Source of the DNA: Lepidodermella squamata
Lineage: Eukaryota; Animalia; Gastrotricha
Length of the DNA: 64,000 bases
Reading direction: 5' to 3'
NCBI GenBank assembly: GCA_047495785.1
Contig: JBLDXI010000029.1
Coordinates: forward strand, 2,480,001-2,544,000
Below the pieces are notes generated by a model that was not told the origin of the DNA, ran no database searches, and worked only from the letters and a program-made list of their open reading frames with translations. This document shows, piece by piece, positions 3,358 through 25,052 of this stretch. Position 1 is the first letter of the stretch. Every line of letters begins with the position of its first letter. The translations under genes and the position numbers were made by a program.

Positions 3358-3671
3358 TATTAAGTGCGGTTTTATCGAACATTTTCAGTCAGCGTCTATG
3401 CGCAATGATATAATTTGGCTTGCGGGTATTTCAGACTCGGAAAGTGCATTAATTTTCGCATAATAAAATAACTTTAAAAAATTTGGCCTGTGATGTCGTT
3501 CCGATGAACCAAATTTACAGATAGCTGCAGAAATCGGTCATTGAAAATTGAGAACAAATAATTTGATCATTTTTATCAAGAGATCTTCCGGCTGTGTTTT
3601 CGCAATTAGTAGAAATAAACTGCGTAGCGAAGCTGCGGTTCAAATTTTAATTATTAGGTTCGTCAAGACGC

Positions 3672-3678
3672 TATAAAA
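3672..3678 (+). promoter_or_regulatory. TATA box of basic secreted protein copy 1
   Basis: TATAAAA ~90 nt upstream of ATG 3765; TATA-like elements also lie upstream of copies 2 and 3. Confidence 0.6.
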
Positions 3679-3764
3679 GGCTATGGGATGTTTTGATAAT
3701 TCATCAAGCTTAGTTGCAAGCCTGCTTTGATATTTCGCTCCTTTTCTCAATTCAAACCAAAAGG

Positions 3765-4355
3765 ATGCGCGCTGTTTTCGCTTTGGCTGCTGTCGTTCTT
3801 TTGGCTCTCGGTAAATCTTTGAAGACATCGTCAGGTCCAATAATCTTACTCGTTTTCTTACTTACAGCTTTCTCCGAAGCCGAGGCTGGCCGTGGTAACA
3901 AGGGCAAAAGTGTCTCGAAGAGCGTCTCTATCAGCGTGTCGTACAACAGGCAGCCGAAGAAGCACGCGATGAAGAAGCGCCCGGCCAAGAAGGCCTTCGT
4001 CGCTGGGCGCAAGCACCGCCGTGCCTCGTTCTCCAAGTCCGTGTCCGCGTCGGTGTCGGCCCGCACGAACAAGCACACCCGCAAGGTCTCCACCAAGAAG
4101 TTCATGCGCGTGCACAAGCGCGGATCCATGTCCGGCTCGTACTCGCGCTCGGGCTCCTTGGGCGGCTACAACAAGAAGGGTGGCAACAAGCGCCACGGTG
4201 GCAAGAAGTTCGGTGGCAAGAAGTTTGGTGGCAAGAAGCACGGTGGCAAGCACGGCAAGAAAGGCCGCAAGGGCAGCAAGAGCGGCAGCTACTCGGCCTC
4301 CAACAACTTCTCCTACTCGGTTGCCGTCGAAACCGGTGCTGCTCCCTCCAAATGA
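3765..4355 (+). CDS. Secreted Lys/Gly/His-rich protein with (Ser-X)n blocks, copy 1 (exons 3765-3810, 3868-4355)
   Basis: 57-nt intron at the same position in all three copies; spliced signal peptide MRAVFALAAVVLLALAFSEAEA; strong C/G third-position bias. Confidence 0.9.
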   Translation: MRAVFALAAVVLLALGKSLKTSSGPIILLVFLLTAFSEAEAGRGNKGKSVSKSVSISVSYNRQPKKHAMKKRPAKKAFVAGRKHRRASFSKSVSASVSARTNKHTRKVSTKKFMRVHKRGSMSGSYSRSGSLGGYNKKGGNKRHGGKKFGGKKFGGKKHGGKHGKKGRKGSKSGSYSASNNFSYSVAVETGAAPSK

Positions 4356-4705
4356 AAACTCTTTGAGTCAAAGCCATTGAACTTCGGTTTCCTTCAATGA
4401 TAATTTATTTCAAAATCTAAAATTGAAAGTAAAGTTGTAACGCTGATCTTGAGTGCAAGTCTCTATTTGGAATTAGTCTGTTCGTTACCGGCAACGAAAA
4501 GGAAGTCAATTTGTCATCCCTTGAACCTAGCGCCAGAAAGAATTGATTTAATATGGAGCGCCACTCGAAATCCTGAAAAAGCGTTGAAATCGATTAAAGG
4601 TTCTTTTGCCTCAAAAGGTATTTTAGTCGCGTGCGATCTAAAAGCACGAGCCGATATGGGCCTGTGTTTTGAACCTTAATCGCGTGGCGTTATAGACGAT
4701 GGGGC

Positions 4706-4711
4706 TATAAA
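4706..4711 (+). promoter_or_regulatory. TATA box of sHSP copy 1
   Basis: ggggcTATAAA, conserved in copy 2 (~18495). Confidence 0.65.
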
Positions 4712-4822
4712 TTTCGATTTATTTTCTCGTTAAAAATCATCACCTGCTTTTGCAATTTAAAGCTCATAGCAATCTTCTCGCTTTCATTTTCGTTCGTGTT
4801 TTGATCTTCTTCAAACTCTAAA

Positions 4823-6139
4823 ATGGCCTGCTCATACACCTCGATCCCCTCGACCTTCGCCGCTGGCTACACCAGCCCGATGAACGTCGAGAGCCTGCTC
4901 CGCAACAAGGTCGACATCTACTCACCGTCGTCTGTTGAGCGCAGCCTCATCAACGCCGCCGTCCCGACCCCGTTCGCCGCTGCCGCCGGCATCCACAACG
5001 TCAACGCCTTCGCCTCGTCCCCGATCGCCTACAACACCTTCGCCTCGCCGATCGAGTGCGGAGCCGAGACCGGCCGCGTCTTCGGTGCCGAGTGCGGTGC
5101 CCAGCTGGCCGCCATCGTCGCCGCCCGCCTCAACACCTTCGTCGGCCAGGAGGTGGCCGTCCGCATCGGCGCCCAGTGGGGAGCCGAGATGTGCGCCAAG
5201 CTGGGTGCCGAGCTCGCCGTCAAGCTCGTCAACGGCTGGCCGGTCGAGCAGTGCGCCCGCTGGTGCTACACTTTCGGAGCCGAGCACGGCGCCGAACTGG
5301 GTGCCATCATCGCCCAGCGCCTGGGTGCCATCTACACCGCCGAGTTCGCCGCCCGCATCGGCGCCGAGCTCTTCGCCGACGTCTGCGCCAAGCAGTGCTA
5401 CGTCATCGCCGCCCGCGTCGCCGAGTCGCGCTTCGGTGCCTCCAACAACTGGAACGCCGCCGCCCGCCTCTCCAACAACTGGACCGGCTCGTTCGAGCGC
5501 TTCGGTGGCATCAACTACCCGACCACCTTCGGCGCCAACACCTGGTCGAACACCCTGTCGGCTGACAACAAGCTGTACAACATCGCCTTCCGCCCGTCCT
5601 CCGAGGTCGAGCTCTACACCCTGACCCACCCGATCCGCATGATCGACGTCGAGGGCAACCGCCAGCTGTACCTGTGCTTCGAGCTCAAGGGCTTCAAGCC
5701 TGAGGAAGTCACCGTCACCCTGAACAAGGCCGAGCGCGCCGTCGTCGTCGAGGCTGCCCACGAGGCCAAGGACGGCAAGGAGCACACCGTCGCCCGCAAG
5801 TACTCGCGCAAGTTCGTCCTGCCCGAGGTTAGTAAATCACTGAACCATCAGTCATCACCTATTTAAATGTTAATTTCATCTGTCTAGACCCTTGCCAAGA
5901 TCGACCTGACCAAGGTTGAGCTCAAGTCGTGCCTGACCCAGGAGGGCCACCTCGTCGTCGAGTGCCAGCTGCCGAAGATGACCACCGAGGAGATCGCCAA
6001 GTGCCCGACCATGTCCGAGCTGTACAACAAGCTGCCCGCCTTCGGAGGCTTCAACGCCGCCGTCCAGGCCTTCGGCGGCATCAACGCCATCAACCGCCGT
6101 ACCTGCGATGTCAAGCCCGTCACCGTCAAGACCGCCTAA
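4823..6139 (+). CDS. Large small heat-shock (alpha-crystallin domain) protein, copy 1 (exons 4823-5827, 5888-6139; 418 aa)
   Basis: ACD motifs FELKGFKPEEVTV, YSRKFVLPE|TLAKID..., KSCLTQEGHLVVE; C-terminal IXI/V-like PVTVK; 60-nt GT-AG intron. Confidence 0.92.
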
Positions 6140-7112
6140 ATGAAAGCCGAATACCATAGCCAAAGAGAAGATGAGCAATAATGCGCAATGTTGAAGAACT
6201 TTGCTTGAGAAAAATTGTGATACCATTCGATGTGATACTCTTGTGTTTCTCAGTTTTCCTCGACAGTAAAACAAGAGATGTTGCGTAAAAATGGTCCGAT
6301 TCCTACTTTATAGCAAAAAATGAGCGAAATCGACAAGGACGAGGTTCGCCTCCACGCTATGAGCCATTTTTTGCACAATCAATACATTTTCCTATGCAAA
6401 TAATCTATCTGGTTGCTGGATGCGAGACCGCAGAAGGCCTTTCAACAAAATGTTGCTACTTTAATTTCAAGATCATACTTCTTGGGATCATTTCTTTATT
6501 TAGATTTGCCCCAACGTCAGCCTCATCTGACGACAAACCCAAACCGCGATGACGAGACGTGGTGACTGGCCCTGAGCGCGAACTTGGCCGCGCGAGCCCG
6601 GCGACCTTTCCAGGGTGGCTGGTCTCGAGGTGGCCGTTGATGAACGTTCCGGCCTGGTGGCTCTTTAATTAGGGCCACTTCCGGAGGGGTCAGTCGCTTT
6701 CAGAGCGGCTTTTCTAATGAAAAACAAAACAGGAACGGAACTACTTTGTGTGAAATTATTTCGCAGCATCATCTTTAAGAACTCATTTTTAGAAGGTTTC
6801 AATTAGATCTAGCGAAAATAGGGCAACACTTTATCTAGAATATCATGAAATAGGCAAATGTCTGCCATATCACAAAGTTATATATAACCACGATGGCATC
6901 CGCGAATTCGTCCAGTCGCCGGCGAAAGTCTCTCCGATTGTATATTGACCGACAGCATGAGCCCGAATTCAGTTGCACGAGTGTATAATGGCCGAATGAT
7001 TTCGCCCGTAAACATAATTGCCCGAATTAGACAATAGAATTTCGAAGGAACTTCTGCCCGAATGAATACGATAATTTCGAGAGAAAATCAGGTAAAAAGA
7101 CGTATTATCGGT

Positions 7113-7279
7113 CAAGGGTTTATCTAGTCTTTTCGAATTGGGGGTGGGTAGTCGTAAAATGGGGTAAAAATGGACCTCAAAAGCTCAAACATAGCCAAAA
7201 AAGCTCGAAATTTGGGGGTGGGTAGCCAAAGTTTGGGGGTGGGTTGGGGCTGGGTCGAGGGTGGCTAGATAAACCCTTG
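7113..7279. mobile_element. 167-bp MITE, hAT- or P-type
   Basis: Perfect 15-bp TIR caagggtttatctag/ctagataaacccttg; 8-bp TSD ttatcggt (7105-7112, 7280-7287). Confidence 0.9.
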
Positions 7280-7325
7280 TTATCGGTATTACATCTGCCG
7301 GCTACCGGCCGTTTCGCGGGTTTCT

Positions 7326-7347
7326 GGTTCAAATCCTATTGGTAGCG
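7326..7347 (+). pseudogene. 3' remnant of a tRNA-Ser
   Basis: ggttcaaatcctattggtagcg matches the 3' end of the tRNA-Ser at 24410-24491 at 20/22 positions; no 5' half visible. Confidence 0.55.
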
Positions 7348-7422
7348 ATTTCTTTTGCGACTACGTCAAAAGGATTAAAGAGTGTCATTATTGACATTAA
7401 TTGGGCTTTAATGTTCGTGCAA

Positions 7423-7494
7423 GGTCCCATGGTGTAGCGGTTAGCACTCTGGACTCTGAATCCAGCGACTCGAGTTCAAATCTCGATGGGACCT
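7423..7494 (+). tRNA. tRNA-Gln (CTG)
   Basis: 72-nt cloverleaf ggtcccatggtgtagcgg...ctggaCTCTGAAtccag...gttcaaatc...gggacct; T-run terminator follows. Confidence 0.97.
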
Positions 7495-7638
7495 CAATTT
7501 TGCAAAAATTTTCATTCTGTTTTTAAGAAACCAAAATTTTTCTTTTTAAATTCGAACTTCGAATATGCTAATGAGACTAAAATTATTTTTATTCCAGCAT
7601 CTATTCCATTGAAAAAGCATAGTTACAACGGTAGTTTT

Positions 7639-7655
7639 GTCAATCTTCGGATTGG

Positions 7656-7694
<39 letters not shown>

Positions 7695-7744
7695 GGCCCC
7701 TGCGCAAGGATGACACGCAAAATCGTGAAGCGTTCCATATTTTT
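7639..7744 (+). ncRNA. U6: U6 spliceosomal snRNA
   Basis: 5' UUCG hairpin, ACAGAGA box, ATTAGCATGGCCCCTGCGCAAGGATGACACGCAAA, oligo-T end. Confidence 0.98.
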
Positions 7745-8237
7745 GGTGCGGAAACTACAAAATATACTTGGTAGGCGAACATACGTACAATTGGTGAACG
7801 TGCTTTCCTCTAGCCGTACAGGTGAACGAACACTCGTTTTATTGAACTTTTTCAGCGAAACGTGCTTTCGCCTAGGTTTCCGCTAAATCATGATCGTAGG
7901 TGACAAGCGGGGAAAATGCGCAAATTAGGGGAGATGACGCGTAGGTGAACACACGTTTCACTGGAAAGCAAAAACACGCGATTAAACCAAAAGCTACGCC
8001 CATGCTACGCCCATGCTACGCCATAGACATAATATCAGTATCAGGGGCCCGTGTACCAGGAAAGGGCTCAAATGCGTCACCAACTTCCAGCTGGCGATTG
8101 TTTTTAAATTAGTCCTTTACTGGTAGTCATGGACTCAATCAAGGCATCTAGCACAGGAGAAATAATACGATTGATGAATCATAGACTCATTTTAATACTA
8201 AATAGAAAACATTCAGGTATCATTTCGGCGGTAAAAT

Positions 8238-10922
8238 TCATCCTCTCACTAACTCTTGCAAAATATCTTCAAGCCTTTTTTCTACCCAATTTCGGGACAA
8301 AAATTATACCAGCGGGTGTAGCGGCAACCAAAATTGTAACAACCGATAATCCAATTGCGATTTGAGAATATGTCTTCGTGAAGAAAGCTGCAACGACACA
8401 GCAACCTGCGAAGGAGATCAGGGCGAAACCGTAAGTAGCGAATCCCGTAAGCCGGAGATCCTTTATCTCAGCAGACTTTTGCTAAAAGAAATACATTTGG
8501 TATTACAAGCAAAGAAATATCGATCAAGCCACGCCTACCTTCCTGAGAGCATACGCCTTGAACAGCGCAGTTAGAAACAACAACCCGAAGATGACGAAGA
8601 ATATGGCGACGAAGACGTCAGAATAGGATTTCTGCAACGAGCAGGCGTATGAGTAATGCTGGTACGCTAGCCCCATGTTTGCTGGTGAATATTCGATTCC
8701 CAAGTCTACCATTTCAGTTTGAAATGGATACAAAGAAAGCCAAACAATTGATATGGTGGCTATGGCTGATGTCAAGAGCAGAACATGCCACATGCCATTT
8801 CTTCGTTTTGGTCTTAGTTGATTCATTCGAACTGTGCTCGGTATAGACAACGAATCACTTCGCGACTCACCCTCGGCATATGTTGCAGCCCTGAATGCAT
8901 TCAGCTTGACCGCAAGCGTTTGAACTCCCGTTCTAATATTTACGAAGCGAAAAGCAATCGTCAGCTTGAAGAGCAGAGACGATGTGATTAATGAATACCC
9001 GACGAGTATCATGAAACATTGCGACATGCAGTAAATACTAGTTTCAAGGCTGCCGAAATTCGACCCAACAACCACACCGATTAACATTAAGATAGAGCCA
9101 ACTATAACAGTGAGATTGAATTCTGGCATGGAATATTTCACGAAATCCTCATTGCGGGACCAATACTGATGGATGAACATTGCAACTAGGGATAAGATGT
9201 TTGCGAAGGAGATAAAGTTGATAACTATTGTTATAATATCTGGAAATAACGGATCCTTTACCGTCAATATTTTAAGTGAATCTGGTGGTGGAAGACCGTC
9301 ATATGTTCGCCATTTCAACTTGTCTCGATCAAGTTGGAATATGTCTGAGGTCCCACGAGTGTCATGAAATGCTATCGGCACATAATTGAGCAAGGAATCG
9401 AAACCAGTGGTCTGGTTATCATCCGCATCCCGGATTTGCTGTACTTGAGTGTAAGCGACAATGCCGGATATTGCATTCAGAGACCTGTTCAGGTCTGAGT
9501 AAAAACCTGTGTAAACGACATTTTCCAGCGATGACTGCATCAGCTGGCGTATTTCAGAGCCATTCTGTTGAAATTTGGACTTGGACGTGACCCAGTTTAG
9601 CAAGGTTTGATTTCGAGAGTTGAGAATAGTCTCCGTATGGTTCAAAGCCGCCGCCGCGACCATAATTTGCTCATACATGAACGTGCTGCAGCATTCCCAG
9701 TAGTAGTAATTGTCTGTTACGTCAACTCGGCTCAGTAGTTCCTTTGCAAAATCCTTCGCCGTAGTTCCAACAGAATCAACAAGTCGGTTTTGCTTGTTAA
9801 TAAATGAATCAAAGTTAGAGTAGATTGTGCTTCGCAAAACGTCGAAAATCATTCTTTCAGTACACCACGGAGGCTTGACTGGGTAATTGGCTGTGAACTT
9901 CGTGTAGGGATGGGCTATAAATACGTAATTGGGGCCGTAAATGTCAGCTTTGCGGAGATAACAAGCAACGAAAGCTGGCAGATTGTTATTCATAACAATA
10001 ATCCTCGGGCGGCTGCGCTTCAACTGATCCATTGCATCCTGAAAGTTGTCATCAGAAGGCATCTCCCCAGTTGGCGGGAGAAAAACTTTCGCGATAACAT
10101 TGATCGATATGTTTTCCCTAACAAGGATCGGCACAAGGATGGCGTTCGTGTACTCCATCATTGACGAGGAATCAGACAAAATGGACACTCTGTTCCACCC
10201 TAAAGTTTTGACAAGTTTGACATTGGCGTAGCTAAAGACATCAGGCGCAGGACTAATCACGTAGTACGCTCTGTATAATCCCCGTAGATGATAAACCATC
10301 GGGTTACTCGACGAAGCACCAAGCTGTATATAGTAGGTGAATGAAATGAAATATAACTCATTGCCAACTTACGCCTACAAAATTGAAGTACTGGGTCATT
10401 CGAGCTAGAGTATCTTGGTCACTACACTCAGGTCCGATAAATATGGGCAGCCGATTTTCTGCGTCCTCGTTCTGCCTCATCGAAAACAGGAACTGATTTA
10501 CCCCAATGGATTGAGTGCACTACGAGAAACAGAAAGCTAATGGTATTCAAGGAGTAGTGACTCAGAGACTCACTTGGTTGTCGATAAATTCTACACCCAA
10601 CTCGTATTTATCTAGCAACCCCAGCTTGGAAACTGTTTCCAGCGCGAATCGAGTAGATTCAGTGCTTATCGGCCCAACAGGTGCCACTGTACCGCCTTAC
10701 AATAGGATTCAAAGCTTCAAGCAAGATTCATGTCTTTTCATTTCTTAGCTTACCGTATCGATGAGTGACTATTATGCGAAGCAGAGTTTTGTTTTCCTTC
10801 AATTTATTTGGCTGAATGAACTTCGGCATCGGCGACTGCATTGTTAGGCGAGAGCCGGCGGCAAACGTTTGCAATTCTTGGGTTAGCAAGATGATGATAA
10901 TAAGAGTATATAATCTTTGCAT
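8238..10922 (-). CDS. Divergent GABA-B-like class C GPCR (at least 5 exons)
   Basis: Signal peptide exon (ATG 10922); spliced Venus-flytrap motifs EFIDNQ|CTQS...IFIGPECS and LGWNRVSIL; 7TM ending IIFVPKL. 3' end (stop 8238) assumes no further intron. Confidence 0.85.
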
Positions 10923-11929
10923 ACTTCTACGGTAGTAAAATTAGGAATGAATGCCGATGTTCAACCCCGCAGCGATAACGTACCGCGCAAAATTTTAACT
11001 AGCTGTATCATCACTAAAGGATATCGAACTTTCAAGACATCAAAGTGCACGCAACGCATGACACGAAATCAAAACAGTCCGGTCTTGGTAGGGCGTCGAT
11101 CTAGCAATGATTGAAGTTAGCTACTAATTTCTCGAGTACGCTACACATACAGTCTATGATCTGCTAAAGATTATAAGGGGGAGAAAAAATGTCTGTTGTC
11201 TGTTGTAATGATAATATATAAGGGCAAAATGGTCCAAATTGCTATTACGAGACGTCTGCAATATTCATCGCCTCGGTTCCATAGCTGTGGTCTCCGCGCC
11301 AGCTTTTCATCGTATGGCAGCACTGATCACTGATCCATCCGCCAATCGCGGGTTCAGCTTATACGCACATATTTTGCGATAGGCCTCTTGAAGATTATCA
11401 AAGCTTCTGCTCGCTTCGAAATTCATGTTGGCTTAAAATGAAAGGAAAACGAAAAATGGAAGCGACAACCGAAAGTTCCCAAAAACTGCCGATTGTACTT
11501 GAAACAAATGCTTTAGATGGAGATGGATGGCGTGAAATAGTAGATTATTTGAATTTTATAACAACAGCAAGATTCTCGGCTGTGGGGCGGGTGACCACAT
11601 TTTTAGTTTTGCTTGTCTTCGGCTTCCTCTATACCCGAAGACCAGGGAACATCATTCGCGGGGAAGAGAAATAAAACTTTCAATTTCAATTGAAATGAAA
11701 ACTGAAAACTATCGATAAATGTAGTTTCATCCGTTTTTTCGAAAGGGCGACAAAAGCACCATGTTGCTGGCAAGAATTAAGGCGGCAAATTAGCCGCGCT
11801 AGTCAAATTACTAGTCATGACTGACTCCATTTTTGTTCTAGCAAAATATTTATAGTTTCCCGGATTCGGATCTTGTTTAGATTCGGTGCGATGATTTCGA
11901 GGTTTGGAGTTGAAATATCGAAATAGAAC

Positions 11930-11973
11930 TCGCGATTGATAGTCTCGCATGTATGCGAGACTATCAATCGCGA
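11930..11973. repeat. Perfect palindrome, 21-bp arms, 2-nt loop
   Basis: tcgcgattgatagtctcgcat-gt-atgcgagactatcaatcgcga. Confidence 0.95.
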
Positions 11974-11985
11974 CTATCGATCCCG

Positions 11986-12151
11986 CTTATCTATTAATCC
12001 TAGTTCATAGTTAGCTAAAATCGTAATAAAACTCGAGAAACATTTACAAGAAAATTCCTGGCCTTGTAAGACAACAACAAGGCCAGGAATTTTCCTATAA
12101 ATGTTTCTCGAGTTTTATTTAGCTAACTATGAACTAGGATTAATAGATAAG
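11986..12151. repeat. ~165-nt near-perfect fold-back hairpin
   Basis: cttatctattaatcctagttcatagttagctaaa ... tttagctaactatgaactaggattaatagataag, with pairing continuing inward to a short loop. Confidence 0.92.
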
Positions 12152-12429
12152 GAACTAGGAGCTTGGAAAAATGGTTAACCAATTTTAATGACGATTCCTC
12201 TGGTTATCCAATCCACAATCAAATTCCCAGTTGAAGACAGCAGAAAAATTCTAATACTGACCAATTAGCTGATAACTTATGATTGATGATAAGGCTGGAA
12301 TTCAATTATTTCCTGCGCTTCGATAAATGCCGGTTCCAATATATAAGGACGTTAGATGTTGAAGAAAAATATCAATCCAGCTCCATTTCAAATAATATAT
12401 ATATTTCGCTCAGACATAGAACCGTAAAG

Positions 12430-13029
12430 ATGCGCACTGTTTTCGCTTTGACTGCTGTCGTTCTCTTGGCCCTAGGTAAATCTTGAAAGCGTTTGCTGGT
12501 CCCATAATCTAACTCGTTATTTTTCGTTTCAGCTTTCTCCGAAGCTGAGGCTGGCCGCGGAAACAAGGGCAAAAGTGTTTCGAAGAACTACTCGAAGAGC
12601 GTCTCCATCAGCGTGTCGTACAACCGGCAGCCGAAGAAGCACGCGATGAAGAAGCGCCCGGCCAAGAAGGCCTTCGTCGCTGGGCGCAAGCACCGCCGTG
12701 CCTCGTTCTCCAAGTCCGTGTCCGCGTCGGTGTCGGCCCGCACGAACAAGCACACCCGCAAGGTCTCCACCAAGAAGTTCATGCGCGTGCACAAGCGCGG
12801 ATCCATGTCCGGCTCGTACTCGCGCTCGGGCTCCTTCGGCGGCTACAACAAGAAGGGCGGCAACAAGCGCCACGGTGGCAAGAAGTTCGGCGGCAAGAAG
12901 TTCGGCGGCAAAAAGCACGGTGGCAAGCACGGCAAGGGTCGCAAGGGCAGCAAGAGCGGCAGCTACTCGGCCTCCAACAACTTCTCCTACTCGGTCGCCG
13001 TCGAGACCGGTGCTGCTCCCTCTAAATAA
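12430..13029 (+). CDS. Secreted Lys/Gly/His-rich (Ser-X)n protein, copy 2 (exons 12430-12475, 12533-13029)
   Basis: Same exon structure and 57-nt intron as copy 1; near-identical protein. Confidence 0.92.
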
Positions 13030-13414
13030 AAACTCTTTAAAGCGAAAAGAATCGAAATAAGTTTTCTTCGTGTAATTTATTCTAGAATTCAAAGGGTGAA
13101 AATAAAAGCATCATGCTGAATTCTTTAACCAAAAGTGTTGTCTATTTAAAGATTTTAATTCGCTTTTATAATTGGTGTGAAAATTAGCTAACTTGTGATA
13201 ACTAGAGTCAATAAATATGCAAATCAGATAAAATGAAATTGCGTTCAGGCGGGAAATATTACGCTCGACTAGTACATTTTTGCAAGCAAGTTTTGTTCTT
13301 AGCGATGATGAGACCTTATAGGGTCACCGTTTTTGCTAGATTTTCTGAAATATTAAGCTTGAATATACATTTTTGAAGGAATCAAGTTTTTGGTGATGAA
13401 GCAACCTCACAAGG

Positions 13415-14794
13415 TCACAGTTTTTGCTTTTTCGCAGCAGGCAGAAATGTTCCAGCTGGCAGCTTGACCGGAATAAGATTAGTGCGATCACGCCATTCAG
13501 GAGCGAACATCACGCGGTATGATGGCTCGGAAAGTCCACCAGTTCCAACTCCAATAACCACATCATGCGTCTTGTTTAATCGCACTCCCGAAGTTCCAAC
13601 CAAATTCATCGAGAAATTGACAGTTTGCCCCGACCCCAACGTCGTTAAATCCCAATCAGGCAACTCAATTCTGTAGGCTGAAATTGTTCCCTTTCTAGCT
13701 TTGAGTTTCGATGAGGGAATTACGAGGGCATAAGCTTCGCCTTTTCTAATCGGTGCAGCCCAGCCGTCGTTTCGAATGGTTACATTGTTACGATCAGCTC
13801 GAGTCATCACGGGTACGTAACCCAGCTTGCTTTGAATGATGTCCAAGCAACTCTGGCCAAGGCTATTAACCTTCTTCCAATTATTAATTACAATTTCACT
13901 CTGGCCGTTGCCCATCGGTCCATCCCTGAGCCAAGCTTGTTTCAAGGCTTCAAAATGGCGCATGGTCCTGTTACATTCTATCAGCGCATTGTTCGTGATT
14001 CCACAAGTTTCGCCGCTAGTTGGCTTGTGGAATTCAGCCATTTGCTTTCTGACTTCGGTATTGATAACTCTCTCGTTGAGTTTCTTGCCAATAATGTTCA
14101 CAAATGTGCCCTCGTCGTGGTTATTGTACAAAATACAATCATCGAATAGACCAAGGCGGTTCTTTCCCTTCTCTGGTTCGACATCGCTGGGTATCAGCGC
14201 GATTTGGTCAGGTCGACGGAAGAAAACCACTGGTATGGACTTAGGAACAGCGTTTAGAATTTCGCGGAATAAATCTGACTGCTCAGCATCTTTTTTGTAA
14301 TTGGTCGAGTGTCCGCTGTACATCTCGCCCCAACGTCCCATGAAACCGGCTTGGAAACCTGAGATGACAGCTGAGTGATTCACAAGGAGAGGCTCCAACT
14401 GCGCCAGGTGAAGCTTGACAATATTCAGCGGAGCATCCTGAACTTTGGCTTTCTTATCGTCAGTATAGGCGAAGCGAAGGATGATTCTCATTCCATTGGC
14501 ATGAACAGCTTCCAGATCTGCACCGATCTCATCGAGCGCAGCTGTTGAGATATTTCTGTCCTTGAATGCTTCAAGGTAGTAAAGACGATGAGTCATCGTA
14601 CGACCTTCCTTGACTCTTTTCTTGAGTTCCTTGACAAACGAACCATGTTCACTCTTATTCGAATGTCTGAAATAGCGCCATGTCTGGGCGTAGAGACCCC
14701 GGTCCGGGTTACGCGGCGATAAGTCCTGAGCCCAAACACAGCTCAACAAAATCACAATTATTAGCGGCAGTGCCGCTCTTACAACTTCGAACAT
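13415..14794 (-). CDS. Secreted DUF4874/DUF4832-family protein (putative glycoside-hydrolase-like), intronless, 459 aa
   Basis: Signal peptide; motifs recalled from this family: ILRFAY, DAP..V..HL.QL.P, QAGFMGRWGEM, RLGLFDDC, GETC, KLGY, IRNDGWAAP. Confidence 0.8.
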   Translation of the reverse strand: MFEVVRAALPLIIVILLSCVWAQDLSPRNPDRGLYAQTWRYFRHSNKSEHGSFVKELKKRVKEGRTMTHRLYYLEAFKDRNISTAALDEIGADLEAVHANGMRIILRFAYTDDKKAKVQDAPLNIVKLHLAQLEPLLVNHSAVISGFQAGFMGRWGEMYSGHSTNYKKDAEQSDLFREILNAVPKSIPVVFFRRPDQIALIPSDVEPEKGKNRLGLFDDCILYNNHDEGTFVNIIGKKLNERVINTEVRKQMAEFHKPTSGETCGITNNALIECNRTMRHFEALKQAWLRDGPMGNGQSEIVINNWKKVNSLGQSCLDIIQSKLGYVPVMTRADRNNVTIRNDGWAAPIRKGEAYALVIPSSKLKARKGTISAYRIELPDWDLTTLGSGQTVNFSMNLVGTSGVRLNKTHDVVIGVGTGGLSEPSYRVMFAPEWRDRTNLIPVKLPAGTFLPAAKKQKL

Positions 14795-15375
14795 ATTTAA
14801 TCAATGCCCTAGGAAAAAAACGAGACGCAAATTTGATTCTTGCAATTGACAATCTTTACAAGAATACAAAGTAGCGATTCGAATATAGACAACCAATTTT
14901 CGCTGTGTCAAATAAATAAAATGTGAGAAATAGTTGCAGCAATAAACAATTTCGGCCGACGATATAAGGGCTCATCTGCTCATGCTATTTACTAAATATT
15001 TTTGCATAATTTTAATTTTATGGAATTTAGCCCGAGTTTAGTTACAACCGATTCCTCTCAATGAGATAAGTCTATTTATATGAAAACGTAGATGTTTCAG
15101 TCTTCATCAAAGCTATTACAGGATTTTCAGAATATATATAATTGAAATTAGATGACAAAAGAGGGATCAAAGACTCAAAATCTCGCTCAAAATCAGATCG
15201 TTGAAGGAAAAAGGGGGCACTACCAGCCAGTGGACAAAATTGTACCCTTTTACACCGTGCTTTACAGGTAGCCGTTGGCGGTTTTGAAAAATGCTTTGTT
15301 AAATGTTAAATTATGCTCAAATTATGCTAGGGGAAAACTTCACATATTGACACTTTAAGGCGGATTTTTTAAAAT

Positions 15376-15770
15376 GCGAGCGAAGCGAGCCACGATCCAA
15401 AATCCTTGCCCCGCCGTAAGAGCGAGCGGAGCGAGCATTACGGGGCAAGGATTTTGGGACGAGCGTAGCGAGGCACCGAGCAAAGCGAGAAAGCGACGAT
15501 TAATTCTTAATTAATCAAGTCGAGCGAAGCGAGATGAATGACCGACAACTAAATACTTCATTCCGCTTTTTTAAACGCGTCCAGCAACTGCCTTACATTT
15601 TTCAAAGACGATTTTCACTGCCTCAGGCGGGTAAAACGGGCCAGAAAAAAAATGAAATCGGTCAGTTCCAAACGTGAAACGAGTCGAAGCATGAGTGAAA
15701 CGAGGCGCAGCCGAGTGCAACGAATGCGGAGACGAGTTTCAATAATTTCAATTTTTTCAAGGCCCATTTT
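15376..15770. repeat. Two branched palindromic elements carrying CGAGCGAAGCGAG-type motifs
   Basis: Stem ccaaaatccttgccccg/cggggcaaggattttgg around gcgagcggagcgagc; second palindrome ~15635-15770 centred on cgaggcgcagccgag. Confidence 0.7.
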
Positions 15771-16070
15771 TCACTACTGCATGCACGAGATTCACACGTG
15801 AAGCTGCTGAACGTGTCAGCAATTTGCGAACTCAGACATTGGACCGGCTTTTTATCGTCGAAATGAGTTAATAAGATTTTAAATTCAGAAAATTCAGATT
15901 CAGAGTTTGAGAATACGATATTATCAAGCTTTCATAATTAAGATGGATTTTTTATTGTTTAAAAATGTGTCTCCTCGTTTTTTAATATGCAGCGAATTAT
16001 GTGAACTATGTGGATTCTGACGCACTCAAACCCCTGTATCTCGATAACGGTGACAGCTGTCCCCTTCGAG

Positions 16071-16200
16071 TAATATGTAAAATAGTTCCCACGGTCCGGC
16101 CTGTTTCTCGATGATAACATAACTGCGCCTCGGCTTCGCCTCGGCTTGTTTTGTGATCATCTCGAAACAGGCCTCCCCTAGGGAAATATTAATACATATT
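16071..16200. repeat. Imperfect palindrome centred on ctcggcttcgcctcg
   Basis: taatatgta...ggcctgtttc...gaaacaggcc...tacatatta. Confidence 0.75.
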
Positions 16201-16581
16201 ATCCTAAACAAAATTATTCGACAATATGGCACTTGATTAGTTTGGTTTGGTTATTGTATCGCTAAAAGGTAGAAAGCGTAATAACGGAATAGCATCCATA
16301 AACTTATAAATAAGGGTAAGAATGAAATGGTTGAAATGGTTTAGCCCTCTCGGCCATGTTTTATGCGAATCCTATACTTTTAATATGAATAATTATTTGA
16401 AAATGAATTATCAGAAATCCGAGTAAATTACCATAAAATGTTGCGCGATTTTCAGTGCAATGTCTGTCTGTTGATCACATTGAGAACACGCCGTAATCAT
16501 CATTTAAAAAAATATTCGAAAAATGACTCATCTTAAACGTTTTTGTTTAGCGTTAGATACTGAATACGCATACCTACCAAT

Positions 16582-17695
16582 AACCCTGTTTATCACCGAA
16601 TTCCGTGAACTTGTGTCTGGAGTTCAAACCTAATGAAATTTCGCTTAGGGGTCAAAACGGTCGCATCCAGGGTATTACGCCCTTTGCCCTTTGACTTCTG
16701 CGCAACCCGTTACCGATTGATTTGCACAGACCTGGCCTCTACAACACATCAACATATTCATCAAAGGTATTACAGCGGGCTCGTAAAAAAGCCGGGTACT
16801 TATAACAATATACTTGCTACTGCGCGCTGTTTTTCGCGAGCAAGCTTTTTATAAAAATGCAAGAAAAACATGAGCGCATCAAGGTCACCACAAATTATTA
16901 TATTCGAGTAAATGCGGCTCCTATTCTATTCTGAATTAAGACCCATGGGCGTGCATTTGAGACCGCGCCTTTATTCGGTTAAATATGGTATCATTTTGAG
17001 GAGGTGCTAGCGGTGTAGAGTATTCCCGGTATTCGGGGATACAGGATAAAAAAAGCATACCGGTATATCCTGTATACATACAGCGTGTCCCATAAGTAGC
17101 GCAAAGAAAATGCACGGAAAAGGGTTCAGAAACTAAACTGAGAGACGAAGTCATATTTCATGACCATGAAAACTTTAGAAAATTTAATAAAATTACGAGA
17201 ATAATACCTAATCAATCATGTCACTTGTTAATTGGATTAAGAAAGTCCGGAGAAATTTGGTCCAACCGGGTAAAATACCGAAAATTACCGAACCAGTTAC
17301 CATCGGGGTTTTCCGGGTTTCTCCGGTAAATTCTTTATTTCTTGGGTTAAATCGCGGATAAAAGATGAAATTTGCTCTCGGTAGGTTTAATTTAAAAAAT
17401 TAGTTGAATTCCCTACAAAAAATTGCGGAATTAATTACTAGCTGCGCAACTTCTGGGACACGCTGTAGCTCCATTATTTCCTTGTTTGCATTTTTTACTT
17501 TTTATATCCTGTTTATCCCCGAATACCGTGAATAATCACGTGAATGCCGTGAGGTTGTGAGTTCAAGCCAAATGAAAACTCACTCCGGCTTCGAGAAGGC
17601 TGCGTTCAAGGTATTACGGCGTTTGCCCTTTGAACTCTGCGCAACCCGTTACCGATTGATTTAGACCGATTATAACTTGCTACGGCGATGCGGTT
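16582..17695 (+). repeat. Two diverged direct copies (~16582-16830 and ~17505-17695) of a short interspersed element
   Basis: Shared cctgtttatc.ccgaat.ccgtgaa, gagttcaa.cc, ggtattacg..tttgccctttga..tctgcgcaacccgttaccgattgattt and acttgctac. Confidence 0.75.
17081..17465. mobile_element. 385-bp Tc1/mariner-type MITE
   Basis: 23-bp TIR cagcgtgtcccataagtagcgca (2 mismatches), flanked by TA on both sides. Confidence 0.9.
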
Positions 17696-18610
17696 TCAGC
17701 AACAAAACTGCCGGTGTTTTATGGCCATTCTCGAATATAATCTGTCAGTTTTCATTGTGAGTGGTGGAATTCACGGCAAGCAGGGCCGCGAGATGACAAG
17801 GTTCGAACTCGGGGTCCAATAACTTCTCGTACCGCATACTCGTACCCGATCTGACCTGGGGTTGCTCCCGTGACTTGATAAAACTCAACTTTCGAATGCA
17901 ACATTGCTCATCGCAATAATTATTAATAAATATTTCAAATTTAATTATTGAGCTTCATGAGCAGCGGTGATAACTCGTTATTAATAGGTAAAATTGATAA
18001 CCAATTTTTTGGAATAAACATGGTTGATGAAGTTTAGGGCAATAATTACTACCGGCGTTTCGGTTATTTTCCATGACCATCAGGGCTTCAGGGATACAGA
18101 GGAGGAATTTTCGCATGAAACAATGAAAGTTTTATTTTTTTTTTCGCATGAAGTTATAGTTATACAATATAATATAAATATCCGACTTAACTTTTTACTT
18201 TAACTTCATGCTATTGCGCTCATAGATAAAACGGTCGAACAATGTTCCCGTCAACAATTAAAAAAATGCGATTGTTTACAATTATTCCTCTCAACAAATT
18301 CTCTGGAACCATTATCGATTGATTTGAATACAGCAAGCCCGTGTACTTCAGAAGCGTCAAAAACGCGCCATGTTGGAGTCGTTCAAAGGTTATTTCGCCT
18401 CACAAGGTATTTGAGTCGCGTGCGATTTAAAAGCACGAGCCGATATGGGCCTGTGTTTTGAACCTTAATCGCGTGGCGTTAAAGACGATGGGGCTATAAA
18501 TTGCGATTTATTTTCTCGTTAAAATCATCACCTGCTTTTGCAATTTAAAGCTCACAGCAATCTTCTCGCTTTCATTTTCGTTCGTGTTTTGATCCTCTTC
18601 AAACTCTAAA

Positions 18611-19924
18611 ATGGCCTGCTCATACACCTCGATCCCCTCGACCTTCGCCGCTGGCTACACCAGCCCGATGATCGTCGAGAGCCTGCTCCGCAACAAGGTC
18701 GACATCTACTCGCCGTCGTCTGTTGAGCGCAGCCTCATCAACGCCGCCGTCCCGACCCCGTTCGCCGCTGCCGCCGGCATCCACAACGTCAACGCCTTCG
18801 CCTCGTCCCCGATCGCTTACAACACCTTCGCCTCGCCGATCGAGTGCGGAGCCGAGACCGGCCGCGTCTTCGGTGCCGAGTGCGGTGCCCAGCTGGCCGC
18901 CATCGTCGCCGCCCGCCTCAACACCTTCGTCGGCCAGGAGGTGGCCGTCCGCATCGGCGCCCAGTGGGGAGCCGAGATGTGCGCCAAGCTGGGTGCCGAG
19001 CTCGCCGTCAAGCTCGTCAACGGCTGGCCGGTCGAGCAGTGCGCCCGCTGGTGCTACACCTTCGGAGCCGAGCACGGCGCCGAACTGGGTGCCATCATCG
19101 CCCAGCGCCTGGGTGCCATCTACACCGCCGAGTTCGCCGCCCGCATCGGCGCCGAGCTCTTCGCCGACGTCTGCGCCAAGCAGTGCTACGTCATCGCCGC
19201 CCGCGTCGCCGAGTCGCGCTTCGGTGGTGCCGCCCGCGTCGCCAACAACTGGACCGGCTCGTTCGAGCGCTTCGGTGGCCTCAACTACCCGACCACCTTC
19301 GGCGCCAACACCTGGGCCAACAACACCTGGTCGAACACCCTGTCGGCTGACAACAAGCTGTACAACATCGCCTTCCGCCCGTCCTCCGAGGTCGAGCTCT
19401 ACACCCTGACCCACCCGATCCGCATGATCGACGTCGAGGGCAACCGCCAGCTGTACCTGTGCTTCGAGCTCAAGGGCTTCAAGCCTGAGGAAGTCACCGT
19501 CACCCTGAACAAGGCCGAGCGCGCCGTCGTCGTCGAGGCTGCCCACGAGGCCAAGGACGGCAAGGAGCACACCGTCGCCCGCAAGTACTCGCGCAAGTTC
19601 GTCCTGCCCGAGGTTAGTAAATCACTGAACCATCAGTCATCACCTATTTAAATGTTAATTTCATCTGTCTAGACCCTTGCCAAGATCGACCTGACCAAGG
19701 TTGAGCTCAAGTCGTGCCTGACCCAGGAGGGCCACCTCGTCGTCGAGTGCCAGCTGCCGAAGATGACCACCGAGGAGATCGCCAAGTGCCCGACCATGTC
19801 CGAGCTGTACAACAAGCTGCCCGCCTTCGGAGGCTTCAACGCCGCCGTCCAGGCCTTCGGCGGCATCAACGGCGTCAACTGCCACGTCAACGCCGTCAAG
19901 CCCGTCACCGTCAAGACCGCCTAA
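18611..19924 (+). CDS. Large small heat-shock protein, copy 2 (exons 18611-19612, 19673-19924; 417 aa)
   Basis: Near-identical to 4823-6139, including the intron. Confidence 0.92.
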
Positions 19925-20744
19925 ATGAAAGCCGATTCCCTATCCAAAGAGAAGATGAGCAATTATGCGCAATGTTAAAGAACTTTGCTTGAGAAGAATT
20001 GTGATACCATTCGATGTGATACTCCTGTGCTATTCGCAGTATTTCTTAAGACAGTAAAACAAGAGATGTTGCGTAAAAATGGTCCGTTTCCAACAAAAAC
20101 TTAGTAAATTCGACAAAGACGAGGTTCGCCTCCACGCCATGAGGCAATTTTTTTCACAATCAATACGTTTTTATAAGCAAATGATCTATTTGGTTACTGC
20201 ATGCGAGACCGCAGAGGGCCTTTCACAAAATTTTGCTACTTCAATTTTAAGATCATACTTCTTGGGATCATTTCATTATTTAGATTTGCCCCAACGTCAG
20301 CCTCATCTGACGACAAACCCAAACCGCGATGACGAGGCGTGGTGACTGGCCCTGAGCGCGAACTTGGCCGCACGAGGCCGGCGACCTTTCCAGGGTGGCT
20401 GGTCTCGAGGCGGCCGTTGATGAACGTTCCGGTCTGGTGGCTCTTTAATTAGAGCCACTTCCGGAGGGGTCAGTCGCTTTCTGAGCGGCTTTTCTAACAT
20501 AAAATACAAAATGTTGGCTCGCAATTGATTCTCCTTATCTCTCATTCACTATATAAAATACCTCAAAGTTGCAACCTGTAGCGATGGCTCCCCTTCAACT
20601 TCCTATGGCGTACATACTTATATTACGCGTTAATTTTTGACAAATTTTTATTATTGAATTATGTCTTCAATAAATTATGAGACAAGGTTAGAGCAACGGG
20701 AATTCATCAACATTATAAGGTATGTATATGTCGATAGTTATTGA

Positions 20745-21326
20745 TTACTCAGCAGCAGCACCAGTTTCGACGGCAACCGAGTAGGAGAAGTTGTTGGAGG
20801 CCGAGTAGCTGCCGCTCTTGTGGCCCTTGCGACCCTTGCCGTGCTTGCCGCCGTGCTTCTTTCCACCAAACTTCTTGCCACCGTGGCGCTTGTTGCCGCC
20901 CTTCTTGTTGTAGCCGCCGAAGGAGCCCGACCGCGAGTACGAGCCGGACATGGATCCGCGCTTGTGCACGCGCATGAACTTCTTGGTGGAGACCTTGCGG
21001 GTGTGCTTGTTCGTGCGGGCCGACACCGACGCGGACACGGACTTGGAGAACGAGGCACGGCGGTGCTTGCGCCCAGCGACGAAGGCCTTCTTGGCCGGGC
21101 GCTTCTTCATCGCGTGCTTCTTCGGCTGCCGGTTGTACGACACGCTGACGGAGACGCTCTTCGAAACGCTTTTAGAAACACCTTTGCCCTTGCTTCCGCG
21201 GCCAGCCTCGGCTTGGGAGAAGGCTGATAATAAGAAAACGAGTTTAGATTATTGGACCAAACAATGCCTTTATAGATTACCGAGAGCCAAAAGAACGACA
21301 GCAGCCAAAGCGAAAACAGCGCGCAT
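20745..21326 (-). CDS. Secreted Lys/Gly/His-rich (Ser-X)n protein, copy 3 (exons 21326-21281, 21223-20745)
   Basis: Same 46-nt first exon and 57-nt intron; one fewer GGKKF unit and one extra SKSV unit. Confidence 0.92.
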
Positions 21327-23164
21327 CTTTCTGTTCGAATTGAGAAAAGATAGAAATGAATGCTTCGAATGGAAAATGGAACTTGAATGGGTGATACATC
21401 TCCAAAATTGCGTCGAGATTATATACCAATAGAGCAATTAATTTACGCGCCGCAAAAAAATGAGCTCTACGCTGCTGACGAACTGCTAATTGGATATCCC
21501 AACTCAAAGTCATTGACTACGTAATTAAAATTTTCTGAATTTTAATAATATTTTATCTCATTTCATGCCACGTTTCAATTTATTGTTCTGATTTGCCACT
21601 TTCCTCATTTGTCTGAACAGCAACAAGTAGACAAATTTCCTCAAAGAGGCTGAACTCAGAATTTATTTTTCGAAATATAAAACCGCATATAGGTGAAAGG
21701 AATGGCAAAATCTTTTGATAAAGCGACGATATGTACAGCAATGTTTTCACAAGATAAAAACAAAGCAGATGCCTTCATATCATAAACGCGGTAATGAATG
21801 ACCGATGGTGATATTGAATAACATGATGGCCATTTCACAAGTCACAAGTACTAAGTCGCGCCAAGCTGATTTTACAATTTTTGCCGAATATTTTTTGAAC
21901 ATGGAGAAGCGACGAGAACAGCAAAAGAAAGCCATAATTCTTCCCGAATTCATTTCAAAATAGTGAAAAATCGCCGTTACTAGGGCATGTTCACATTCCA
22001 ATTTCAAGCTTGGGCTTTCGGACGTAGATATTCTGCTAGAAAGCAATTGGGATCGCGAGAGTTCCATTAGAAAGTCTGTTTTTTGCACCTGTTCTCAATT
22101 TGTTTCTGCGACCTTTCACCCGGTTAATGCCGATCCTAGTATTTATTTCGGTGCAGCAATAATACAATGCCTATTCGTTTCAAAAGCCTTTATAGTGGTA
22201 ATACCAATTTTTAAGGTAATGATGTGTTAAGGAGACGAACTTCGCGAGGCTTTGCTATCACTTTCATTTCTCAATTTCTTCCTGCAAAACTTGAAGCCCA
22301 GAAAAAACGACGTATGGACTGCTGCCATTAGTATATTTGAATGTGCCAGGTGTGAAAAAATTAGTGAGTTTTTTTCCTAATCCCGCGAGACAAAGCAGCA
22401 GCGGTAGAAGTTTATGTAGGTACTGTATAGACCGCGTCTTTCAGCCGCATATACGAATGAATTATTTGCTAATGATATCTTTATTAGCCTTATTTTTTAC
22501 GGTTACTTTTTTGAGGCTGAACTTGACTCAAATTATTACAGCTATTTAGGGGCCAGCTAATTTTTGCCTGCTCGTGTCGATAAGAAACGCTAACGTGTTT
22601 TTCGTGCCCAAAACCTGATGAGACATCGCGATTACGATGCTGGTACTCGGAACTTATTCATTTTATAGCCATGACCAACAATCCATATTTATTGCCATCG
22701 TGCTATGATATGATAAGTATAAACCAGTTTCAGGAATGCAGAGCGATCCCTTATTTACGTTATCAACCCGCCTTCTTTCATGTTACCGCCGTCTTTCAAC
22801 ACTGACACCTAATTTACATTTTCCATGATAAATAATAATATTTATACCTACGACCAGGTGGGTTGGTATCGTAATATTATTAGCCGCACGGTGACAAGCG
22901 CGTGAAAAAAGCGAAATGATGATAACCAAAATTTGCGATTATTATTTTTATTACCCGAATAACATATGTCGAGCCGACGCGTCTCGTAGCGGTGCGACAG
23001 TATAATAATAATAATATTTCATGCTTTGGCGCTGACGAATTGCAAAACTCCGCAACACCCCCACCCACATGCCCTTGATGGGTGGTACGATAAAAGGCCG
23101 CCAGTGTGAACCATTTTCTATAGCGCTCTTGTAGAACCAACCAAGAATACCGTAAAATATTACC

Positions 23165-24409: not shown

Positions 24410-24491
24410 CGCTGCCAGTAGGATTTGAACCTACGCGCGGAGACCGCATCTGATTTCAAGTCAGACCCCTTAACCACTCGGGCATAGCAGC
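24410..24491 (-). tRNA. tRNA-Ser (TGA)
   Basis: 82-nt cloverleaf with long variable arm, anticodon loop CTTGAAA. Confidence 0.96.
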
Positions 24492-24667
24492 TTTCGTATT
24501 TTGTGTTGACAATAGATGCAAGATGTAATGAGCTCCTCACAGTGCGATGCGTTGACAATTCCTTTCTCAGCAATTAAATTCAACTCTCCGCGCCAACAAG
24601 CAATTTTCAACCGAGAAATGAACTAAAATGAGGATTGATTTGTTTTTGTTTTCAAGCCCCATTGAAG

Positions 24668-24860
24668 GGGTGAGCCGAATGCCAGAAGCACTGCAATACT
24701 GGGCCGACTCGTGGGCAGGGACCAGCAAGCTGGAGACGCCTGCCCTTGTAGCCAAAAATCAGGCTAATATCGAAGCCCCCACATGGAGGGCGTTGTAGAT
24801 ATTAAACTACAAAGAACAGATACTACACTTTGATCTTAGCCAGTAAGGCCGAGAAGCGAT
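24668..24860 (-). ncRNA. U2: U2 spliceosomal snRNA
   Basis: ATCGCTTCTCGGCCTTACTGGCTAAGATCAAAGTGTAGTATCTGTTCTT, Sm site ATTTTTGG, 3' loop TATTGCAGT; 3' end approximate. Confidence 0.97.
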
Positions 24861-24980
24861 GACAAAAAACGGAAAAATTTTTGAGCCGCGTTTAGAAATG
24901 ATAGGCGTTCATATCGGTATCATCATCTGAATATTTTAGAAAATTTATGAAAAAAAATATTGGAAAAATGCAAAAACATG

Positions 24981-25052
24981 TGCGTCAGCCGGGAGTCGAA
25001 CCCGGATCGGCTGCTTGGAAGGCAACCATGCTGACCGTTACACCACTGACGC
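24981..25052 (-). tRNA. tRNA-Gly (TCC)
   Basis: gcgtcagtggtgtaacgg...gttgcCTTCCAAgcagc...ggttcgactccc...ctgacgca. Confidence 0.97.

Follow-up and report, generated by a model that had tools for sequence, protein, structure and literature searches.

In a 64-kb window of the genome of the gastrotrich Lepidodermella squamata (assembly GCA_047495785.1, contig JBLDXI010000029.1, positions 2,480,001 to 2,544,000; the window is this whole stretch, and all coordinates below count from its first letter), two unrelated gene families are both multiplied within 18 kb. One encodes a giant small heat-shock protein (sHSP), and the other a secreted, basic protein with stripes of alternating serine residues. 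A first-pass annotation of the same DNA had proposed that the two families were co-amplified and make up a candidate system. Here, we find that the adjacency of the sHSP and basic genes is explained by two separate duplication histories, and that the existence of a 'system' is not supported. On the sequence evidence, we think it rather likely that these are two independent, lineage-restricted families that are interleaved and do not form one unit: the sHSP gene was copied together with a U3 small nucleolar RNA (snoRNA) gene and without a basic gene, and the basic genes are the older duplicates.

Duplication histories of the two families

The gene content given by the first-pass annotation was confirmed, and spliced gene models were obtained for both families; by tblastn and self-BLAST, the window holds exactly three basic-protein genes and exactly two sHSP genes.

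3765-4355, + strand: basic1, exons 3765-3810 and 3868-4355, 177 amino acids (aa)
12430-13029, + strand: coding sequence (CDS) of basic2, exons 12430-12475 and 12533-13029, 180 aa; 12262-13029 with its promoter
20745-21326, - strand: CDS of basic3, exons 21326-21281 and 21223-20745, 174 aa; 20745-21492 with its promoter
4823-6139, + strand: sHSP A, exons 4823-5827 and 5888-6139, 418 aa
18611-19924, + strand: sHSP B, exons 18611-19612 and 19673-19924, 417 aa

Self-comparison of the window showed that the sHSP genes belong to a longer, sharp-edged duplicon, the two copies of which are 94% identical over about 2.15-2.17 kb and each contain a U3 gene that was missing from the first-pass description.

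4583-6729, + strand: duplicon copy A, comprising the sHSP promoter, the sHSP gene, a spacer and U3, with sharp edges
18372-20511, + strand: duplicon copy B, comprising sHSP and U3
6469-6709, + strand: U3 snoRNA of copy A (RF00012, 103.9 bits against a gathering score of 34, model positions 1-219)
20249-20489, + strand: U3 snoRNA of copy B (RF00012, 107.4 bits, gathering score 34), between sHSP B and basic3

Because the 241-nt segment at the end of the repeat is identified as U3 by Rfam, the repeated unit consists of an sHSP gene with a 240-nt promoter and a U3 gene. Each U3 gene lies inside the duplicon, ~330 nt downstream of the sHSP gene, and the right edge of the unit falls ~20 nt beyond the U3 3' end; the spacer of copy A carries a perfect ATGCAAAT octamer ~100 nt before U3, and copy B has AAGCAAAT. 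Identity between the copies was 0.94 in the promoter and 5' untranslated region (UTR), 0.96 in the exons, 60/60 in the intron, 0.86 (gaps counted) to 0.92 (MAFFT) in the 3' spacer and 0.967 over the next 241 nt, which are U3, and stood at 0.52, the random level, in the flanks on both sides. No terminal repeats or target-site duplication were evident at the duplicon edges. The duplicon holds no basic gene, and the sHSP and basic similarity blocks never join in the self-comparison; likewise, no remnant basic gene was found beside the duplicon edges by tblastn, by reading of 6700-7640 or among the open reading frames (ORFs) of 14.8-18.6 kb.

The similarity among the basic genes has a different extent. 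It spans ~600 bp, beginning ~25 nt upstream of the ATG and ending ~10 nt past the stop codon; their introns are 74-81% identical, and alignments of the 300-nt flanks, upstream as well as downstream, are no better than those of shuffled sequence. The number of synonymous substitutions per site (Ks) is 0.13-0.17 among the basic copies compared with 0.02 between sHSP A and B, in which even the noncoding spacer is still alignable. Given these differences in Ks and in the divergence of introns and flanks, the basic array is the older one, and the sHSP-U3 unit was copied later inside it. In the sequence of events that we propose, a local array of genes for secreted, polycationic Ser-stripe proteins would have occupied the region first; a 2.15-kb unit, with the sHSP gene, its 240-nt promoter and the downstream U3 gene, would later have been copied to a site 13.8 kb away within that array, and this copy would have brought the second sHSP gene near another basic gene.

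As a general phenomenon, highly expressed genes that are duplicated segmentally or in tandem may carry a small-RNA gene along, and the sHSP-U3 unit resembles such duplicates in being a sharp-edged local copy of two whole transcription units with higher identity in coding than in spacer sequence. We know of no description of an sHSP and a U3 gene combined in one duplicon.

Promoters, adjacency and alternative explanations

Upstream of the five genes, the following promoter elements were located.

3603-3679, + strand: basic1 promoter, with CAATTAG at 3603-3609 (-162 from the ATG) and TATAAAAG at 3672-3679 (-93)
12262 onward, + strand: basic2 promoter, with CAATTAG at 12262 (-168) and TATATAAG at 12340
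Up to 21492, - strand: basic3 promoter, with TATA at ~21420-21425 and CAATTAG (CTAATTG on the + strand) at 21486-21492 (-166)
4706, + strand: TATA box of sHSP A, TATAAAT
18495, + strand: TATA box of sHSP B, TATAAAT

A TATAWA box is present at -90 to -117 from the ATG in 5/5 genes, with ~0.065 expected per 60-nt zone, and a TATA-like hexamer within 160 nt also occurs at three of eight neighbouring gene starts. The first-pass claim that codon bias and TATA boxes distinguish the two families from every neighbour therefore holds for codon bias, for which 17 ORFs were compared, and is overstated for the TATA box. CAATTAG, which we take to be a homeodomain-type core, lies in the same orientation ~70 nt upstream of the TATA box in all three basic promoters, which are otherwise unalignable, and has 15 sites in 128 kb (both strands of the window). 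It is probably a functional element of these promoters, and the basic genes are driven by a promoter type of their own, defined by CAATTAG at this distance from TATA. Neither sHSP gene has the motif within 300 nt of its start. Similarly, none of the 8- to 10-mers in the promoter segment shared by the two sHSP copies recurred in two or more of the basic promoters, and the sole cross-family 8-mer was AT-rich and found in sHSP B only. Beyond the TATA box, the sequences thus offer no cis-regulatory hint of sHSP/basic co-regulation. The proposal of co-amplification is not supported on these grounds, namely that the sHSP duplicon lacks a basic gene, that the basic repeats are confined to the CDS and older, and that no motif beyond TATA is common to both.

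The physical proximity that had motivated the proposal is real. In tandem orientation, 468 nt separate the basic1 stop codon from the ATG of sHSP A; in convergent orientation, 820 nt separate the stop codons of sHSP B and basic3, with a U3 gene in between. These arrangements rule out a shared divergent promoter, and basic2 has no sHSP gene within 5 kb. When gene intervals are drawn roughly, a basic gene is no more than 820 nt away for ~17% of the intergenic positions in the first 30 kb; with a chance of ~0.17, a second sHSP/basic adjacency is thus unremarkable for a local duplication.

Two points weigh against the independence of the families. The first is a symmetry of the duplicon edges: at each of the two edges facing a basic gene, the distance to the stop codon of that gene is 228-234 nt, which may be beyond what the packing of a compact genome would give. 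The second is that the comparison with relatives is a weak test of linkage, because the sHSPs available there lack the helical domain of the window proteins (see below) and are not orthologues. Among named sequences, the STOML2 protein of the window is matched best by those of molluscs and other protostomes, at 58-64% identity; in one ENA metagenome contig, STOML2 is 80% identical. The gene order GPCR (G-protein-coupled receptor), Dpy-30-like, Ank, GCP, STOML2, Ank, Ank, found at 33.2-49.3 kb of the window, is kept in contigs L011 and L012 (ERZ27333047, ERZ23486787), and public metagenomes thus contain a related, more compact species (ENA samples ERZ27333047 and ERZ27332993). Four further contigs from the same ENA samples as this syntenic relative (L007-L010; 4-11 kb, GC 0.38-0.41) carry sHSP relatives, the neighbours of which are MAPEG, zinc-finger, NmrA, FMO, cathepsin, Miga and Cys-loop receptor genes. 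Together, the six contigs (L007-L012, 54 kb) contain five sHSP genes of the same subfamily. In these 54 kb, no basic Ser-stripe ORF was found by a screen that picks up basic1, basic2 and basic3 in the window, and Rfam found no U3 in L007-L010. In L008 (1963-2640 and 4481-5218; also in L007), two sHSP genes of the subfamily are separated by 1.8 kb and flank an unrelated gene, which indicates that local sHSP duplication recurs in the lineage; GC content at third codon positions (GC3) is 0.52 in these genes compared with ~0.3 in their neighbours.

The 25 kb around the locus are also rich in small nuclear RNA (snRNA) genes transcribed by RNA polymerase II (Pol II) and in Pol III genes.

7423-7495, + strand: tRNA-Gln(CTG)
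24410-24491, - strand: tRNA-Ser(TGA)
24665-24860, - strand: U2 snRNA (155.7 bits)
24980-25052, - strand: tRNA-Gly(TCC)

Several copies of a GGGGGTGGGT(A/T)G-type motif are found at 7120-7260, between the duplicon and the tRNA-Gln gene.

One alternative to independent histories is a permissive chromatin domain, in which Pol II and Pol III genes of high expression cluster and duplicates are preferentially kept, with no need for a common function. The two U3 genes, U2, tRNA-Gln, tRNA-Ser, tRNA-Gly and the five genes of biased codon usage, all within 25 kb, would fit such a domain, but a class C GPCR gene and a gene for a DUF4874 protein, both weakly biased (GC3 ~0.5), lie between the biased genes, and we consider this explanation possible but unlikely.

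A second alternative is a functional pairing, in which sHSP and basic protein are co-expressed in a secretory cell type, in eggs or in a dormant stage and selection keeps the genes linked; the sHSP could then support massive synthesis as a cytosolic holdase, or be a component that is released despite having no signal peptide. In favour of such a pairing, both families use the same set of optimal codons and TATA promoters, and there are two adjacencies, each within 0.5-0.8 kb. Against it stand the separate duplicons of different ages, the lack of a common cis motif, the isolation of basic2, the change from tandem to convergent orientation with the intervening U3 gene, and the probability that the second adjacency arises by chance; moreover, the proteins differ in compartment, one having a signal peptide and the other none, and no linkage was found in the 54 kb of the relative. 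We therefore regard the pairing as rather improbable, and the caution of the first-pass annotation that no chaperone-client link is implied was right. A wider version, in which genes for an sHSP with a Gly/Ala/Glu-rich (GAE) domain, for polycationic secreted proteins and for snRNAs form a recurrent linked cassette in the lineage, kept together because one and the same type of secretory or egg-forming cell also produces the sHSP, seems to us very doubtful; if true, it would leave the sHSP the same two possible roles, here in the mass production of polycationic material.

Codon usage and expression

In support of independent families that are both in heavy use, codon usage separates the five genes from their surroundings. 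GC3 was 0.81-0.93 in all five compared with 0.40-0.61 in 17 neighbouring ORFs, and the effective number of codons (Nc) was 24-35 compared with 47-61, such that the five genes fall outside the range of the neighbours in both measures. GCC, CGC, ACC, GTC, ATC, AAG, AAC, TAC and CAC are used near-exclusively, and the G-ending codons GCG, GGG, ACG and CGG are avoided, making the preference specific for C-ending codons; some T-ending codons are retained (GGT at 0.23-0.25, and GCT at 0.50 in the basic genes). The introns of the biased genes are AT-rich (GC 0.30-0.37), as are the 100 nt on either side of each biased CDS (GC 0.27-0.38). That the bias is codon-specific and does not extend into the AT-rich introns and UTRs is a sign of translational selection and thus of high expression, and argues for such selection over GC-biased conversion or a compositional island. 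That both families are very highly expressed, as the first-pass annotation had suggested, is accordingly the best reading of the codon data and well supported by them.

It is highly improbable that GC-biased gene conversion among multicopy genes made them rich in GC3, which would require neither high expression nor a dosage story: coding parts are more alike than flanks, with a 60/60 sHSP intron against a spacer of 86-92%, and the similarity among basic genes ends at the CDS edges, which suggests conversion, but the introns inside the putative tracts have kept their low GC, the four G-ending codons are avoided, GGT and GCT persist, and sHSP coding words are present in many small sequencing runs guessed to be RNA. 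Intron GC and the identity of the codons used led us to reject conversion as the source of the GC3 richness.

All three basic genes are intact, and the ratio of nonsynonymous to synonymous substitution rates (Ka/Ks) among them is 0.04-0.20, i.e. indicative of purifying selection. Intact copies that appear to be kept under such selection are compatible with dosage amplification, and we infer a dosage benefit of the extra copies.

Word matches to sequencing runs provide a further view of the locus. Among words sampled from the sHSP gene, 48-63% were found in nine runs of small size (47-118 Mb) that come from four studies and are guessed to be RNA, and 41% in a tenth. In ten runs (X5-X10, X13-X15 and X19), the matches were confined to the sHSP coding stretch, with only 0-3 of 149 words from outside the sHSP gene present, where the outside stretch includes all of basic1 as well as the sHSP UTRs; the corresponding counts were 13-22/149 in runs X2-X4 and X12, and 93/149 in X1, the probable source run. 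Those RNA runs that contain part of the locus and have readable labels are aquatic or freshwater polyA metatranscriptomes. One reading of these ten runs is that they contain sHSP RNA but no RNA of basic1; another is that they represent related strains, or paralogues, with near-identity limited to the sHSP CDS. The latter is to be considered because even the UTR words are absent.

The encoded proteins and their surroundings

Each basic gene carries a 57-nt phase-1 intron after codon 15, within the signal peptide, and the translations start with a hydrophobic N-terminus that closes with A-E-A ahead of GRG. The mature proteins, of 152-158 aa, have a pI of ~12 and a net charge of +39 to +43, and consist of 17-18% Ser and 15% Gly, with zero Cys and zero Asp. 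Four alternating-Ser stripes of 8-14 residues are separated by blocks of Lys, Arg, His and Gly, so that repeated stripes, Gly/Lys spacers and a predicted signal peptide, the features of an (SX)n-block protein, are all present. The basic protein had zero matches in Pfam, in the PDB sequence search and in the Atlas feature search. These proteins are probably a mass-produced extracellular material.

With respect to design, the basic protein resembles the H-fibroin of caddisflies, which is likewise a secreted, basic protein of a freshwater animal with Ser-stripe blocks and Gly-rich or basic spacers. According to the published accounts, this underwater silk is built of [(SX)nE]m blocks and G-rich spacers (PMC13267644), and the blocks form phosphoserine beta-domains cross-linked by Ca2+ (PMC4929942). 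In contrast to the giant H-fibroin, the basic protein has only ~155 aa and a Glu after the last stripe only, its animal falls outside the insects by the best protein matches, and it shows no detectable sequence homology to H-fibroin in the Pfam, PDB and Atlas searches; the apparent likeness is limited to design.

The sHSP is predicted to comprise, from N- to C-terminus, a disordered segment, a four-helix Gly/Ala/Glu-rich domain, a W/N-rich linker, an alpha-crystallin domain and a V-T-V tail. Exon 1 alone matches Pfam HSP20 (PF00011) with 28.9 bits compared with a cut-off of 20.8, over profile positions 6-65; a homologous-protein search with exon 1 gave no match, and against the PDB there were weak sequence matches to 7pe3 and 4ydz. 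Both copies end in ...KPVTVKTA, an I/V-x-I/V anchoring motif, and relatives close with comparable motifs. No signal peptide is apparent from the translations. Residues ~76-204 were modelled as four helices of ~30 residues each (predicted local distance difference test, pLDDT, 73; predicted template-modelling score, pTM, 0.63). An exhaustive HMMER search of 1.84 billion representatives found no sequence relative of this domain, and the Atlas feature search gave no usable match. A ferritin- or artemin-like identity was dropped, as the shape matches from Foldseek-PDB and Atlas were generic helical bundles only.

In the same 1.84 billion representatives, HMMER identified 46 sHSP relatives of 40-60% identity, aligned only over residues ~205-335, i.e. 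the W/N-rich linker and the crystallin domain. The nearest are environmental, and most of those looked up come from transcript contigs of ~1 kb; a scan of JGI metagenomes likewise yielded six loci, all of them ~1-kb transcripts without flanking sequence. Each of the seven relatives tested matches HSP20. The sHSP of the window belongs to the alpha-crystallin family and has, in addition, a helical N-terminal domain that is new. With known sHSPs, such as Sip1 of C. elegans (PDB 4ydz) and p26 of Artemia, it shares the alpha-crystallin domain, the C-terminal V-x-V and the lack of a signal peptide, but it differs from the usual members in its length of 418 aa, which is about double, in its helical domain and in having no heat-shock element: none (three inverted nGAAn units, at most one mismatch) was found within ~520 nt upstream of either gene. 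Because of the latter, constitutive or developmental expression is most likely, and the protein is best viewed as a putative abundant cytosolic holdase. Abundant, developmentally regulated sHSPs are known, and the diapause-specific p26 of Artemia provides a functional analogue for an abundant sHSP that is not heat-inducible (PMC3428274).

One environmental relative of the sHSP (P0001) carries two alpha-crystallin domains, as in p40 of schistosomes. In these animals, the major egg antigen p40 is a two-domain sHSP, and the eggshell precursors are rich in Gly, Tyr and Lys. The schistosome egg and the locus described here have in common an sHSP-family protein and basic, Gly-rich secreted proteins, with co-occurrence in the egg being a feature of the schistosomes; in contrast, the basic protein has no homology to the eggshell proteins in the searches made.

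The window comes from a genome with short introns, and its other genes include those for GPCRs, Cys-loop receptors, ankyrin proteins, a gamma-tubulin-complex protein and STOML2. An intron-less gene at 13415-14794 (- strand) encodes a secreted protein of 459 aa with DUF4874 (E 2.7e-34) and DUF4832 (8.2e-14), a pair known mainly from bacteria, which makes horizontal acquisition possible; a word-based search gave no exact record and no homologue at 1e-30. Two Cys-loop receptor-like genes stand in tandem at 50724-51707 and 53307-54227 (both - strand), and their ORF translations look highly similar. Repeats were found at 17101-17459 and 26989-27344 (inverted, 79%) and at 16620-16723 and 17559-17662 (80%), and these dispersed copies in the gene-poor 14.8-18.4 kb are probably a transposable-element relic.

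Taken together, the locus provides a clean, sharp-edged example of a two-gene duplicon that unites a protein gene with a U3 snoRNA gene. In the basic family, the CAATTAG/TATA signature has outlasted the divergence of the rest of three paralogous promoters and could mark a regulon of secreted cationic proteins, and the codon evidence places both orphan families among the most heavily translated genes of the animal.

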